Assembly (NCBI GenBank): GCA_965202585.1
Contig: CBDBBG010000090.1
Coordinates: forward strand, 1-64,000
DNA: 64,000 bases
Direction: 5' to 3'
Origin: Thalia democratica
Taxonomy: Eukaryota
Below are positions 29,120 to 36,071 of the stretch, one piece after another. The position numbers and the translations under genes are program-made. Below the pieces are notes generated by a model. It saw only the letters and a program-made list of their open reading frames with translations, ran no database searches and had not been told where the DNA came from. Numbering within the stretch: the first letter of the stretch is position 1; each line of letters starts with the position of its first letter.

Positions 29120-30224
29120 GTAGAGTTTGAGACTGATGTTTTTTTACCATGAAAAAAAAAAAAAAATATTTTTTAGTCAAACATGATAAAAACATGTTTG
29201 CTTTTTTATCATCACAATTCAAAAACTTGTAGCCTGGTGGATTGGGATATTAATGAAAGATTTAAAAACTTGCAAGGTGTAAACTAAGTTATTAGAAATA
29301 ACTTGAACTGTTGTTATGACCAAAATTCAAAAAAGTGACTAAGTGACCAAACTAAAATATAAATGCAAAACGAAATTAAAGTAGCAGGTCCGAAAAGATG
29401 TATTTTGACTAATACTTCGTATAATAACTGTAATTATTAAAAAAATTGAAACGAAATTATTTTGTTTTTAATCTTAAAAAGTTTTAAATGTGCTTTAACT
29501 AAAAATTAAATAATCCATTATTGGGATAAAAAAGTTTTTGTACAGTAAATGCTTAAATTTTGTTCAAAATCTAGGGAAGTGTTATAATTTTCAATCAGAA
29601 AGAATATTTCTGTACTTCTTTAATAATTTGTTCTTAGTAAATTAAAAAACAAGGTTGCTATTGTATTGTTTCTTATAGTTATTTTTTATTTAAACAACAT
29701 TAGATAAAAGTTTTTTTTGTGAAAGCAATCTTAAACAAGTGTTTTTTTAATGTATATACTTAAAGACTTTTTAAAGATGTTAAAACTAACTAAAGAAGCT
29801 TACGATGTTATTTTGTATGATAGCGGTTACACAAACTTTAAATAAAAAAACTAAAAGGTTTTAATTAATTTAAAACAATGGTTCATAGCAACTAAAATTC
29901 TTAGTTTCAAAATTTATGTAAAAAATAATTAAAAATATAACTTTATTAGCAAATATGTTTAAAATTGATTTATTTATTCAATGCATACATTAAAAAAATC
30001 ACAATAAATCTCAAAAATTTTTTTTTACGAAAAGCAATAAAAATAACACAAAAATTTGCGACTAAAAAAGTTTAATATGCCCGTAATGTACTATTTGTAA
30101 AATTATTTTCTCGTTAAACAATAAAAGCTAAAAACTAAAAGTTTAGAATATTTTCATCGTTTTATAAAACTAAATAAATTAAAAAATTATAATTTTTTAT
30201 ATTTCTAGCTATTTATACTGTTAA

Positions 30225-30237
30225 CTATTTGAATAAG
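30225..30237 (+). other. Spliced-leader-like sequence CTATTTGAATAAG at the LINE 5' end
   Basis: Identical to the 3' 13 nt of the Ciona SL exon ATTCTATTTGAATAAG, 22 nt upstream of the ORF1 ATG. Confidence 0.6.
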
Positions 30238-30259
30238 GTTTTGTAATTTAAAAAAGTAA

Positions 30260-31153
30260 ATGTCTATTGAAGCTGAAATTAAAGCATTGGTTGAGTCCTC
30301 CAAAATTGGGAAACAGCTGAAAGAAAAACTGATTGCTATTGGAAGTAAGAAGGACAATGAATTTAGTTGTTTTCAAGCTGAGATGCTTAAATTGAAGGAA
30401 GATTATAATGAAAAAAGTAGAATTATTGAAAATAACATTGATCAGATTCAAAAAGATGAATTCAGCAGTAAGAGAATAGACAATATAGAAAATAGAATTA
30501 CAGAATTACAAAAAAGTTTCTCAGAATTTAAGTCTGATTTTACTTCTAAATTTAACAAGTTTGAAGCTAAATTCTCCAAATATGCTGATGCTATGCAGAA
30601 AAGTGAACCAACAGAAATTATCACAAACATTAGTACCAAATTAAATTTAGTAGCAGAAAAAATAGATGCTGAAAATGAACAAAAACTGAAAGAAAAAAAA
30701 GCTTTAAATGTAATAATATTTAACATTCCAGAAAGTAAAAATCCAACTCATAATGCACTAGAAAGTTGCAAAAATGATCTAAAAATTATTCAACAAGTAT
30801 TAGGAGAAAATAAAATGAAAAAAGAAGAGTTTAAGTCACTTTATCGAGTTGGTAAAATTGCAGCTAACAAAATCAGACCAATTATAGTCAAATTAAATAA
30901 TTTAGCATCCAAACACAGACTGTTAAGACTGAGAGATTTGAAAATGTTTAATGGTGAAATTGAATCAAAAATCTACATCAATCCTGACAGAACTCTCTTG
31001 GAAATTGAAGCTTTCAGAACATTGAGAAAAGAAGTTAAAATAAAGCAAGCCATCGCTGATGAGAATAAATTGGACATAAAATATGTTATAAGGAACAACA
31101 AAATAGTTGAACTGACAAAACAGCCCTTTCGTTACCGCTCCCAGGACATCTGA
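30260..31153 (+). CDS. LINE ORF1p (coiled coil plus RRM/CTD-like)
   Basis: 297 aa; N-terminal heptad-rich region; LNVIIFNIPES, YRVGK..RPIIVKL and IYINPDRT motifs typical of CR1/L2/Jockey-group ORF1. Confidence 0.9.
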   Translation: MSIEAEIKALVESSKIGKQLKEKLIAIGSKKDNEFSCFQAEMLKLKEDYNEKSRIIENNIDQIQKDEFSSKRIDNIENRITELQKSFSEFKSDFTSKFNKFEAKFSKYADAMQKSEPTEIITNISTKLNLVAEKIDAENEQKLKEKKALNVIIFNIPESKNPTHNALESCKNDLKIIQQVLGENKMKKEEFKSLYRVGKIAANKIRPIIVKLNNLASKHRLLRLRDLKMFNGEIESKIYINPDRTLLEIEAFRTLRKEVKIKQAIADENKLDIKYVIRNNKIVELTKQPFRYRSQDI

Positions 31154-34064
31154 GATTAGTGGAGGAAATCGTGAGTCAACGGGTATAAACTTATTAAGTG
31201 ATAGGATTAATTTTAACACTAACAAGTTTTCCTATATAAATTGTAACAAGAACTATTTAAAAGTTTGTTACACTAATATAAGATCTGTTATAAATAAATT
31301 TTATATTTTAGAGAACTATATAAATTTGAATAACATTGATTTATTTTTTCTTACTGAAACATGGTTGACTAATAATGTCAACGATGCCACAGTGTGTCTT
31401 TTTAACTATAACATTTACCGAAGTGATAGGTCTAGTAGGGGTGGAGGTGTTGCTATCCTTTTCAAAAATTCGCTTAAAGTTATTAAAGTTAAAAACGATT
31501 TTATCTCTACTAGCAACATCAATTTTGAATACCTATGTGTAGATGTAATTTTAAAAAAGATGAAGTTAAGATTTTGTTGTGTCTACCTTCCTCCACTGTC
31601 TGCTAGATGCGCACTGACTGTTCAAAATGTAATCAAAATGATTAAAATAGTTTTTCCAAAAGAGTGTTCTTTTTATGTTCTTGGTGATTTTAATATGCCA
31701 AATATAGATTGGAGGATTCCTAGCACAGATTTCAATAAACCCCATGAGTGTTTTCTTAATTTTTGTACAGACAATTTTTTAACCCACGTAATTGAAAATC
31801 CAACCCATAAGAATGGTAACATTCTCGATCTCATAATTTGCAATCATTTTGGTCTAGATAGAATCATATCACACTCAACTAATTTTCCATTAACAAACAC
31901 TTGTGATCATAACTTGCTTTCACTAACAATTAAAATTGAAAACAAAATAACACCTATTGCTAAAGACGTCTCATATGACTATAAAAAAGCAGATTTTGAA
32001 AACATCAATGATTTCCTTTCAAAAATTAATTGGACCTCTTTATTTAAAAATTCAAAAAATCTCCAGCATTTCTACGATCAATTCATTAGCTCAATCCAAA
32101 TCTCAATCAAACGTTTTGTTCCAATTTTTTCTAAAAATAACAAAAGTAAAAAATATCCATCTCATATTAAAAAGTTATTGAAAGAAAAAGTGAATCTATA
32201 CAAAAAAAGTAAGACAAATAAATCACTTTTGATAAAATACAAAAACAAGTCTAAAGAATATCAATTAGCTGTTAAAAAATACAACTTTGAATATGAAAAC
32301 AAATTCTGCAATAACACAAATTTTAAAAAGTTTTGTAGCTACGTGAAATCTAAACTTAAGTTAAATAATTCCATACATCTCTTATATGATAATGATAAAA
32401 ACAAAACAGTAACCTCAGATTTTGAAATAGCAACACTTTTTAACATAAATTTTCAAAAAGTTTTTAAAAAAGACGAGAGTTACCAGTCTTTTAAGCTACC
32501 CCAAAAGAATTGTAGTAAGATGCAAAATTTTTTCATAACCTATGAAGACATTATAAGTTCAATTAACCACTTAAAAGATAAAATCATAAGAACGCCAGAA
32601 AACATTCCACCCTATTATATCAAGCATGTTATCCAATCAATAATTTTTCCACTTTCATTAATATTTAATTGCTCTCTAGAACTATCTGATGTTCCTAAAC
32701 AATGGAAAACATCTTTTATTATTCCTGTGCACAAGAAAGGTAACATACACGATGCATTAAATTACAGACCAATATCTCTAACAAGTGGCTTTTCAAGAAT
32801 TTATGAACATATTGTATCTGTAAAAATTCTCAATCACCTCTTTGATAACAAATTATTAACTAACAAACAGTTTGGTTTTGTCCCAAACCGCTCATCAACC
32901 ATTCAACTGTTAACATGCTTACATTCTTGGTTAGTTCCTTATCTCAAAAATGAATTTACTAAAGTAGTTTATACGGATATTCAAAAAGCCTTTGATTCAG
33001 TATCACACAAAAGATTGTTAAAAATTTTAAATCAGTATGGGCTACATGAAAGCTTAATTGATTGGTTTGATAACTTTTTAAATAATAGATCACAAAGAGT
33101 ACTCATCAATAATACGCTTTCTGACTCTTTAACAATCTACAGTGGAGTACCACAAGGTGGTGTAGTTGGTCCCCTTCTCTTTTTAATTTATATTAATGAT
33201 ATTTGTTCAAACATTGATATTAAAAGTGAGTTAAGCTTATTTGCAGATGATGCCAAAATCTTTAGTCAATCAAATACTTCATTACAACTATCTTTAGATA
33301 ATATTTACATATGGTTAAAAACAAGAAAACTAAACTTAAATCCTAGCAAATGTAAAATTCTAACCATTAACAAAAAAGAATCTTCTCCAACTGACCTATT
33401 AATCAATAACATCAAGTTACCAGAAATTAAAGTTTTTAAAGATTTAGGAATTTATATTTCCAAAGATTTGAAATGCAATAAACATATCAACTATTTATAT
33501 AAGATTGCAAAAATTACATGTTATCAAATATTGAAAAGTTTTAAAACTAATTCTGCTTCAATTCTAACAAAACTATTTAAAACATACGTTCGCCCTAAAC
33601 TTGAGTTTAGTACCCAAATTTGGTCACCCCATTTAAAAAAGGATATTAACAAAATTGAATCTGTGCAAAGGAGTTTTACCCGTCATATTTGTAGTCGTTG
33701 CAACATATCTTACACGTCATATAATGGTAGAATGATTAAATTTGGCTTGAAATCACTAGAATATAGAAGATGGGAATTTGATTTATTAATTCTTTACAAA
33801 ATTATCAATGGCAAATATAAAAGTTTTTTTAACCAGTTTTTTAATTTTTCCCAAAATAATTATCAACTAAGAGGAAATAATTTGAAAATAAAATGTAAAC
33901 ATGATTTTCAAAACAGTCAGTGGCAAGGCGCATTTTTTCACAGAGCAAAAGCTATGTGGAACAGACTACCTCAGGATATAGTATCTTGTGAGAGGGTAGA
34001 ACAATTTCGTTTAAAGCTAAAAAGATTTGATTTAAATACGATAAATACCAGTAAAATTAACTAA
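31116..34064 (+). CDS. LINE ORF2p (APE endonuclease plus reverse transcriptase); no AUG before the endonuclease
   Basis: Frame open from 31116, overlapping ORF1; YTNIRS, LTETWL, GGGVAI, GDFN, CDH; QFGF, DIQKAFDSVSH, GVPQG, FADD; stop 34062-34064. The ORF-track start at 31326 is a TTG inside the endonuclease. Confidence 0.92.
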   Translation, partial: QNSPFVTAPRTSEISGGNRESTGINLLSDRINFNTNKFSYINCNKNYLKVCYTNIRSVINKFYILENYINLNNIDLFFLTETWLTNNVNDATVCLFNYNIYRSDRSSRGGGVAILFKNSLKVIKVKNDFISTSNINFEYLCVDVILKKMKLRFCCVYLPPLSARCALTVQNVIKMIKIVFPKECSFYVLGDFNMPNIDWRIPSTDFNKPHECFLNFCTDNFLTHVIENPTHKNGNILDLIICNHFGLDRIISHSTNFPLTNTCDHNLLSLTIKIENKITPIAKDVSYDYKKADFENINDFLSKINWTSLFKNSKNLQHFYDQFISSIQISIKRFVPIFSKNNKSKKYPSHIKKLLKEKVNLYKKSKTNKSLLIKYKNKSKEYQLAVKKYNFEYENKFCNNTNFKKFCSYVKSKLKLNNSIHLLYDNDKNKTVTSDFEIATLFNINFQKVFKKDESYQSFKLPQKNCSKMQNFFITYEDIISSINHLKDKIIRTPENIPPYYIKHVIQSIIFPLSLIFNCSLELSDVPKQWKTSFIIPVHKKGNIHDALNYRPISLTSGFSRIYEHIVSVKILNHLFDNKLLTNKQFGFVPNRSSTIQLLTCLHSWLVPYLKNEFTKVVYTDIQKAFDSVSHKRLLKILNQYGLHESLIDWFDNFLNNRSQRVLINNTLSDSLTIYSGVPQGGVVGPLLFLIYINDICSNIDIKSELSLFADDAKIFSQSNTSLQLSLDNIYIWLKTRKLNLNPSKCKILTINKKESSPTDLLINNIKLPEIKVFKDLGIYISKDLKCNKHINYLYKIAKITCYQILKSFKTNSASILTKLFKTYVRPKLEFSTQIWSPHLKKDINKIESVQRSFTRHICSRCNISYTSYNGRMIKFGLKSLEYRRWEFDLLILYKIINGKYKSFFNQFFNFSQNNYQLRGNNLKIKCKHDFQNSQWQGAFFHRAKAMWNRLPQDIVSCERVEQFRLKLKRFDLNTINTSKIN

Positions 34065-34384
34065 TTTTCCACTGTAACAAAAGGAAAAATATTCGTTTCC
34101 CTACGCCTCCCCCCTACAAACTATTAGTTTACTTAGATATTTTGTAGTTATGAATTTTGTTTTATAAGCCATGATTTTAGACAAACTTCTTTACTGTGTG
34201 TACTAAGTAATATATAAATTTGAATTTTTTGAACTGAATTTTCAATTTAGTTCATTTGTTTATGATATTGTGTTTAACTTTGTGTTTTCATTTAAATTAT
34301 GTTTGTATATATAAATATAATTTATCTTAAAGTTTTGAATATAAGTTTATTATCTTTTTCTCTTTTTGTGTGTCCTGTTTAAGT

Positions 34385-34408
34385 GGCTCAGGTTTTGATG
34401 CCTGAGTC
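34385..34408 (+). other. 3'-UTR stem-loop of the LINE (candidate RT recognition element)
   Basis: GGCTCAGG-TTTTGATG-CCTGAGTC: 8-bp stem with one G-U, just before AATAAA and the TAA tail, as known for CR1/L2 3' ends. Confidence 0.65.
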
Positions 34409-34659
34409 CAACATTGCACAATAAACAATATAATAATAATAATAACTTTAAATCTTAACTACTAGAATTATGCAGAAAACTATTAAACTCTTATAATAAA
34501 AAAAAATTTAATTGTGTTTAATGGACATACCTTTTTTTAATTTATAACTAAAAAAAAACTTAAACTTGTTCGTTAATAATTTTTTATACCTATATAAACG
34601 TTTAGGTCGCTATATATTTTGAGTTTAAATCAATATATTCATTGTACTTTACGAAAGTT

Positions 34660-36071
34660 TTAATACTGAGGCATTTTAGCACATGAGAAACAAAAAAGAG
34701 TATTAGTAGCATCACATGATTCTTCAGACCATTCATCTTTATCAACATCATAACAAACAACTGATGAACGTAATTCTTGAAATATCTTAATTTTATTTCC
34801 GATTGACATAGCTCTACTTAAATGTAAATTGTAAGATGGCTTAAGAGCAACAAATTCCTTACAAACTTTGTCAAATACTTCACAATTGTTATTACGATAA
34901 CCAATAACAAACAATTTATCTTTTATAACAACTAAACTGTGATTAATTTGATTATTTATCATACTGGGCATTCTAGACCATTTATCACCGAATACATCAT
35001 AAGATTCTACTGTGTTTAAATAATTATTATCATTATCCATTCCACCTGAAACAACAATATTTCCTTGAAAAACTACGGAAGCTGGTAAATCTCTTGATTC
35101 ATTCATTCTAGAAACTTGTTTCAGGCTTTTGTCTTTTGTATTAAATCGCAAACAAGAATTCGTTACTATCACTTCATAATCATCATCATACCAGTGTCCA
35201 CCAACGATAAATATTTCATTCATAAATGCACAAGTACAAAAATGTTCACGTTCATCAACCATATTAGTTACTACAGTCCATTCATTAGTAGCAGGTGAAT
35301 ATTTTTCGACTAATTTTATTAATTTATCAGAATTATCATAACCACCAAACATATAAAGTTCTCTTTTGAAACAAACAGCTTCAAAGTATGCTCTACATTC
35401 ATTCATTGAAACAAGGTCCTTCGCATTATTCATGTTACTTCCATCAATTTGTTCTATTTTACTTAATGTTTTATTTGATCTATTGACATAATTTCCACAA
35501 ATTAACAAGTCAAAATTACTTTGGTTACAATACCTCTTTGTGTAAAAAATGTTTGACTTGTTTTTAAAGCAGTTCTTGGCTGCCAAATCTTCTTTTAAAA
35601 TGATGACACTTTTACAGTTATCAGTAATTGATGAAATTTTATCTATAATATATTTCAATGCATGCTCTGACAGCAAAGGAAGTCTGACTTTTAGTAACAA
35701 TTGTTTTGCATATTTGCTACGTTCTTCAAAGTTAAATTTCAACCAAGTAATTGATGCATTGAAGATTTCAACTTCTGAGTGAATATTCAACTCAGAACTT
35801 GCAAGTATTTTTTCAACAAGACTAAAGTCTAATTGTAAAAAGTTTTGAGTTTCAATTACCATTGAAAAACAACGTTGAATATAAAGCAAGGATGACTCAG
35901 AAATAGTTGCTAGGTTGTAACATTTAGCTAAACTATAAAATGCAACAACATTTTTAACTCTTAATTTGTCTTGAATGACTTTGCTTATCTTAATAATTGT
36001 ATCCTCTTTTTGTAGAATCTTATTCAATTCTAAAGCTAAAACTATGTTATTTTCTTCCATACTTGGTACAT
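34660..36071 (-). CDS. Kelch-like protein exon 2 (end of degenerate BTB, BACK, Kelch repeats)
   Basis: Intact frame; acceptor ttgttttag at 36073-36072, phase 1 (G|AT); BACK motifs (NVVAFY, SEVEIFNASITWL, VRLPLL) and GG-type Kelch repeats (LYMFGG, IFIVGG, IVVSGG). Confidence 0.92.

Follow-up and report, generated by a model that had tools for sequence, protein, structure and literature searches.

After each jump, a LINE needs a full 5′ end and a transcription route, which LINEs are known to secure by an internal promoter or by inserting at specific sites. Among the elements described next to spliced leader (SL) sequences, NeSL-1, CRE1/2, SLACS and CZAR are site-specific non-LTR elements that encode a REL-type endonuclease and occupy a fixed site in the tandem SL RNA genes, with SL-gene sequence on both sides. 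Chimeric retrocopies such as U6-L1, and other snRNA-LINE chimeras, arise by template switching, through which the whole small RNA is copied. Partial and full SL exons fused to LTR and LINE elements have been described in parasitic flatworm genomes (PMC12582326), among them that of Schistosoma mansoni (PMC5832876), and the authors suggested that these originated from the integration of elements with trans-spliced transcripts (PMC12582326, PMC5832876). The flatworm loci were by-products of SL-gene searches, were presented with no junction analysis, and might include assembly artefacts (PMC12582326, PMC5832876). Dinoflagellate retrogenes carry relicts of the DinoSL, which entered the genome when trans-spliced mRNA was reverse transcribed, with the SL marking the 5′ end of the retrocopy (PMC6050394, PMC5585692, PMC12014239); these relicts are located on host genes that were copied in trans, and repeated cycles can stack them. 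No report of an SL-tagged LINE in tunicates, or in any chordate, was found in our literature searches.

The whole stretch of Thalia democratica DNA that was analysed (64 kb, referred to as the window) harbors an intact, full-length LINE of 4.2 kb with APE and RT domains, located at about 30225–34445 on the + strand (Table 1). At its 5′ border lies CTATTTGAATAAG, which is followed by GTTTTG and corresponds to the 3′ 13 nt of the 16-nt SL of Ciona, ATTCTATTTGAATAAG (PMC7986045, PMC1488885). Like the flatworm loci, the window LINE presents a genomic SL exon sequence on a retrotransposon, but it differs from them in the chordate host, in the four LINE lineages involved, in the base-exact junction and in the position of the SL at the border of the repeat. 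With NeSL-1, CRE, SLACS and CZAR it has in common that a non-LTR retrotransposon stands next to an SL; however, the APE of the window LINE is N-terminal, the flanks are unrelated and the SL, truncated to a variable extent, directly adjoins the UTR, and the element falls outside that group. The contrast with NeSL/CRE elements drawn in the original prediction was therefore correct, as the endonuclease is APE instead of REL, the copies are dispersed and SL-gene flanks are lacking. The U6-L1 chimeras resemble it in having small nuclear RNA sequence at the 5′ end of a LINE-derived retrocopy, whereas here the SL exon is found alone, cut exactly at the splice site. In contrast to the dinoflagellate relicts on host genes, it is the autonomous retrotransposon itself that is tagged, and the extra AATAAG units of one relative (L020) are reminiscent of the stacking seen there.

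The position of the 13-mer, the trailing GTTTTG and the distance of 22 nt to the ATG of ORF1 were all found again as predicted, and the proposed identity to the Ciona leader agrees with the published 16-mer. The exact 13-mer is single copy in the 64 kb and was present in none of 100 dinucleotide-preserving shuffles. From the base composition, its expectation is 1.0e-7 per position, in line with the earlier rough estimate of about 1e-7, and 0.013 per window. The three bases upstream of the 13-mer are TAA, in place of the ATT of the 16-mer, and the first 1–2 bases of the leader (from 30225) could equally be flank. The junction reads AAG/GTTTTGT; as in an SL relict, the SL exon sits directly on the transcript body, ends at its 3′ AG and is followed by neither an SL-RNA intron nor an Sm site. 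No Sm-like motif was detected within 30238–30259 and no Rfam family matched the region around the LINE 5′ end, which upholds the earlier statement that the leader is not followed by an SL-RNA intron with an Sm site. An SL RNA gene at this locus was ruled out, since the Sm-like motif is missing, the ORF begins 22 nt after the leader and the first 3 nt of the SL are absent.

The anatomy of the element is that of an APE-type LINE, with ORF1 upstream, APE and RT in ORF2, a (TAA)n tail and the presence of 5′-truncated copies. The 297 aa product of ORF1 had no Pfam match, and the domains of ORF2 were identified by Pfam as Exo_endo_phos_2 (the N-terminal APE) and RVT_1. The 5′ UTR of the window copy starts as GTTTTGTAAT, and the 3′ UTR is 99% conserved among the other copies of the window's subfamily. 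Other copies end in tails of (TAA)4–8, followed by unrelated flanks. The tail and the 3′ hairpin appear to be CR1/L2-like, and the LINE is assigned to no clade. The last 38 nt of ORF1 are also part of the ORF2 frame, which is without an ATG near its start in the window subfamily (31116–31330); L008, a member of the subfamily with 79% ORF1 identity, has an ATG where the window copy has ATT. Frameshift, reinitiation or a non-AUG start may serve for the translation of ORF2. At the other end of the element (34366–34445), 30–40 contigs per run start fitting the window at 34366 and are unlike the sequence before it, with a depth peak in that bin. These final 80 nt, which comprise the hairpin and the tail, may be common to a short non-autonomous element, or 34366 may be a favoured truncation point.

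Table 1. Features of the window LINE (window coordinates) and 5′ ends of related copies (contig coordinates).
Feature or copy	Position	Strand	Description	Basis
Probable SL-derived leader	30225..30237	+	13 nt from the 3′ end of the ascidian SL (16 nt), with terminal AG	sequence, shuffles, L004 junction, depth border
LINE 5′ UTR	30238..30259	+	22 nt, start GTTTTGT common to related families	sequence and relatives
ORF1	30260..31153	+	297 aa, intact; ATG at 30260	relatives with 49–94% identity in marine metagenomes
ORF2 frame	31116..34064	+	open from 31116; APE ~31260–31860, RT ~32730–33380	Pfam
3′ UTR	34065..34428	+	hairpin, stem 34385–34392 pairing 34401–34408; AATAAA 34420–34425	
Tail	34429..34445	+	TA(TAA)5 microsatellite, 3′ end of the element	
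L004 (window subfamily)			full 16-mer, junction identical to the window's, unrelated flank; body 98.6% identical	
L005, L013 (window subfamily)	L005:83–100, L013:168–185		18-nt variant leader ATTCAAATATTGAATAAG, start ATTC, end TTGAATAAG	
L001 (window subfamily)			variant leader in decayed form	
L006 (window subfamily)			truncated within the UTR	
L008 (79% ORF1 identity subfamily)			15 SL letters, or 17-nt extra-T variant	
L019 (49% ORF1 identity family)			15/17-letter form, as L008	
L020 (49% family)	L020:183–206		12 letters plus two extra AATAAG units	
L018 (49% family)	L018:120–140		decayed 14/16 form, TTAG variant, partial duplicate upstream	
L032 (54% ORF1 identity family)			full 16-mer after unrelated flank	
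L031 (54% family)			contig start exactly at SL base 1	
L033 (54% family)			contig start 3 bases before the SL	

Contigs of two organism runs were aligned to 29500–34900 and their depth was summed. The summed depth rose from 492/726 (bin 30043–30223) to 47,643/87,141 (bin 30224–30404), a step of ~100-fold at ~30224, which places the start of the family at the 13-mer to within a few bases. Towards the 3′ end the depth climbs further to ~400,000, ~8-fold from 5′ to 3′, which is the usual gradient of LINE 5′ truncation, and the depth suggests a copy number of hundreds to thousands. One contig from the flank, obtained from the second organism (record 19), agrees with the window over 29753–30226 and continues with 33 letters unlike the LINE; the 13-mer is thus not plainly part of the pre-insertion site. 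There was no clean empty-site joint among the joints listed for the two organism runs, and joints such as 30118 to 34302 were dismissed as an empty site because their sides span only 21 letters of low-complexity sequence. Around six copies with both flanks no convincing target-site duplication was detected, and none brackets the window element. The sequence ACTGTTAA was considered as an upstream sequence common to the window and L001 and was discarded, being unsupported by the other copies and by the depth border. The window sequence was recovered in the two organism runs and in many marine metagenomes and metatranscriptomes. Among the latter, contigs (X19) that fit the element body at 95–99% begin at 30388, and the SL/UTR junction is covered by no RNA read or contig.

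The window copy is not visibly within a sense-strand host transcription unit. Downstream of it, a single-exon ORF of 466 aa with BACK and Kelch domains (KLHL-like) is located on the − strand (34660–36060), convergent with the LINE and with its stop 215 nt from the LINE tail. Loose contig ends are numerous on both sides at 34712–34757, which suggests another short repeat in this flank.

A word search with ORF1 retrieved 21 relatives, nearly all of them from ENA marine metagenome assemblies, and their sequence upstream of ORF1 was read. A total of 20 informative 5′ junctions were obtained, namely the window's own and 19 from related copies on contigs of marine metagenomes. An exact look-up of the window ORF1 returned no match, and a search of viral contigs with ORF1 returned no relative. 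L012, the single match of a metagenome DNA-pattern scan with the ORF1 start, was unrelated and due to chance; the viral-contig matches to the SL followed by GT, inside phage coding sequence, were also due to chance.

At least 12 exact SL letters were observed at the border in 8 of the 20 informative junctions, and variant or decayed leaders in four more. The SL sequence borders many independent copies in four LINE lineages, where it stands behind unrelated flanks and before family-specific sequence, and its 5′ end is shortened variably, with 16, 15, 13 or 12 letters being present. The upstream flanks are unrelated in the window, L004, L005, L008, L013, L019 and L032, and a non-SL 5′ UTR shared further upstream by the other full-length copies was looked for and not found. 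The 12-mer TATTTGAATAAG occurs seven times in 63.5 kb of LINE loci (expected 0.09), always on the + (coding) strand and always at the junction. Within the window subfamily the bodies are 98.5–99.9% identical, a figure that is softer than the evidence from junctions and flanks because assembly may have collapsed the metagenome contigs of such an abundant repeat into a consensus. The leaders of this subfamily are of more than one kind (Table 1), and L013 has four extra bases between the variant leader and GTTTTG. The 18-nt leader of L005 and L013 may be a second host SL variant, or a master copy may have passed it on. The SL of L008 attaches at a point 17 nt further upstream, where it meets CACATAATTG, with a junction of AAG/CACATAA and no GT behind it, which indicates that the SL exon behaves as a separable unit. 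Of the seven copies in the 79% subfamily that are independent, six have no fresh SL and open with a decayed motif resembling the leader (ATTGATTAAAG type).

Full-length ESTs of Ciona contain SL microvariants that include the 13-mer, a 15-mer, an extra-T 17-mer and a TTAG form (PMC1488885, Table 1), and these four forms are also found among the leaders of the present LINEs. It is only a suggestion that a leader variant with an internal AG (L020 and L018) might allow the stacking of relicts as in dinoflagellates. One contig further revealed the surroundings of a copy with the full 16-mer (L004:3–1290), namely, ~110 nt upstream of this copy and on the same strand, a coding exon for carbamoyl-phosphate synthase (CAD-like) that terminates with a GTGAGT donor. 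At least one copy carrying the SL is therefore located in sense orientation inside a host gene, provided that the contig is no chimera.

The 13-mer is most probably a reverse-transcribed piece of the host spliced leader. The original prediction had proposed that the LINE RNA is SL trans-spliced and that the SL is reverse transcribed into the new copy, and this account is well supported, with the common sequence of the copies starting inside or at the SL. From its identity to the leader of Ciona, we infer that the 16-mer is the SL of Thalia democratica, and the joining of SL to LINE would have taken place at the RNA level. The spliceosome would trans-splice the SL exon onto the RNA of a LINE lineage, using a 3′ splice site located exactly where the short 5′ UTR begins (AG/GTTTTGT). 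The SL-capped RNA, with the ATG of ORF1 22 nt behind the SL, would be translated, and target-primed reverse transcription, starting at the (TAA)n tail, would copy it into DNA. A reverse transcriptase that reaches the 5′ end of the RNA would leave the whole 16-nt SL in the new copy, and one that halts a few bases early would leave 15, 13 (as in the window copy) or 12 nt. The variable 5′ shortening of the leader is indeed what is expected if reverse transcription halts near the RNA cap. The terminal AG of the retro-copied SL, which lies behind a pyrimidine-rich stretch, might then act again as an acceptor, and each cycle would in that case restore the leader. L004 and L032 both have the SL at 16/16, although the UTRs that adjoin it agree, judged by eye, to only about two-thirds, and a perfect SL beside UTRs that differ between families fits trans-splicing followed by full-length reverse transcription. 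Several features nevertheless speak against an origin by trans-splicing. The element is without a bracketing target-site duplication, and the ancestral form of the junction is AG/GT, as an unspliced SL RNA would show. Furthermore, most copies of the 79% subfamily carry the decayed motif in place of a fresh SL and L005 and L013 have one variant leader in common, suggesting that leaders can also be inherited instead of being renewed.

Inheritance alone is the basis of the rival explanation that survives best. According to it, the SL was captured once in a common ancestor, through trans-splicing or in some other way, was selected as part of the 5′ UTR (for example within an internal promoter or as a translation element) and is transcribed from base 1, with no ongoing trans-splicing. 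We consider this unlikely as an account of the leader, while it is a serious rival for how most copies propagate. Homology between families extends over the SL/GTTT junction and the UTR that follows, as a single capture implies; however, the SL is perfect where the neighbouring UTRs have diverged to ~65% identity. The decayed motif in six of the seven independent copies of the 79% subfamily also fits an inherited leader, but the fresh SL of L008 sits upstream of that motif. The ATTC-starting 18-nt variant common to L005 and L013 is a further point in its favor, against which the bodies of L004 and L005 are 99.88% identical over 3.4 kb, a comparison subject to the same softness of contig consensus, yet have different leaders. 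Moreover, the extra-T/15-nt form occurs in two different families (L008 and L019), contrary to simple inheritance.

A derivation from the whole, unspliced SL RNA, either as a chimera formed by template switching or recombination or through residence of the element inside an SL RNA gene as in NeSL/CRE/SLACS, is much less probable still. The GT behind the leader in the ancestral junction agrees with such a chimera, but in L008 and L013 the SL stands on non-GT sequence. The UTR of one family includes AAATTTGG, a motif similar to the Sm-like AGCUUUGG of Ciona, and in this family leader and UTR together measure 45 nt, where the SL RNA of Ciona has 46 nt; the 22-nt UTR of the window, on the other hand, is without an Sm-like motif, and the fresh perfect SLs of L004, L019 and L032 precede differing family-specific sequence. 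The AG/GT junction and the AAATTTGG motif leave open a remote origin from a whole SL RNA. Insertion of the NeSL type into an SL gene was ruled out by the unrelated flanks upstream of the leader, by the APE, not REL, endonuclease and by the dispersal of the copies, which by depth may number hundreds to thousands. Finally, a coincidental match between an AT-rich 13-mer and a genome itself rich in AT (~25% GC), for which 0.41 matches per window are expected with one mismatch allowed, is effectively refuted by the low expectation for the exact match and, above all, by the recurrence of the leader at one and the same junction in seven further contigs, where the 12-mer would be expected 0.09 times at any place.

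The original prediction had added, as a hedged corollary, that the element may rely on host transcription of the outron type and not on an internal promoter. Beyond the origin of the leader by trans-splicing and reverse transcription, a more far-reaching reading may be proposed tentatively, and we regard it as possible but somewhat doubtful. The LINE lineages might be promoterless and transcribed within longer host or read-through RNAs, with their 5′ end being set by trans-splicing at an AG acceptor that the elements themselves recreate.

Full-length LINE copies that start with the host SL would mean that, in a chordate, the RNA of a transposon is a substrate of host trans-splicing. The leader at the 5′ end is a built-in marker of complete reverse transcription, and if trans-splicing is obligatory, the element would have a different way to set its 5′ end and to acquire a cap. 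In practice, the leader flags 5′-complete copies and reveals SL variants, and the use of trans-splice acceptors becomes readable from DNA alone in a species with few molecular tools. If the lineages are in fact promoterless, the host leader would be a heritable and self-renewing part of the life cycle of the element, which would constitute a new solution to the 5′-end problem of LINEs, and variant leaders such as those of the ATTCAAATATTGAATAAG type would report further SL RNA species of the host.
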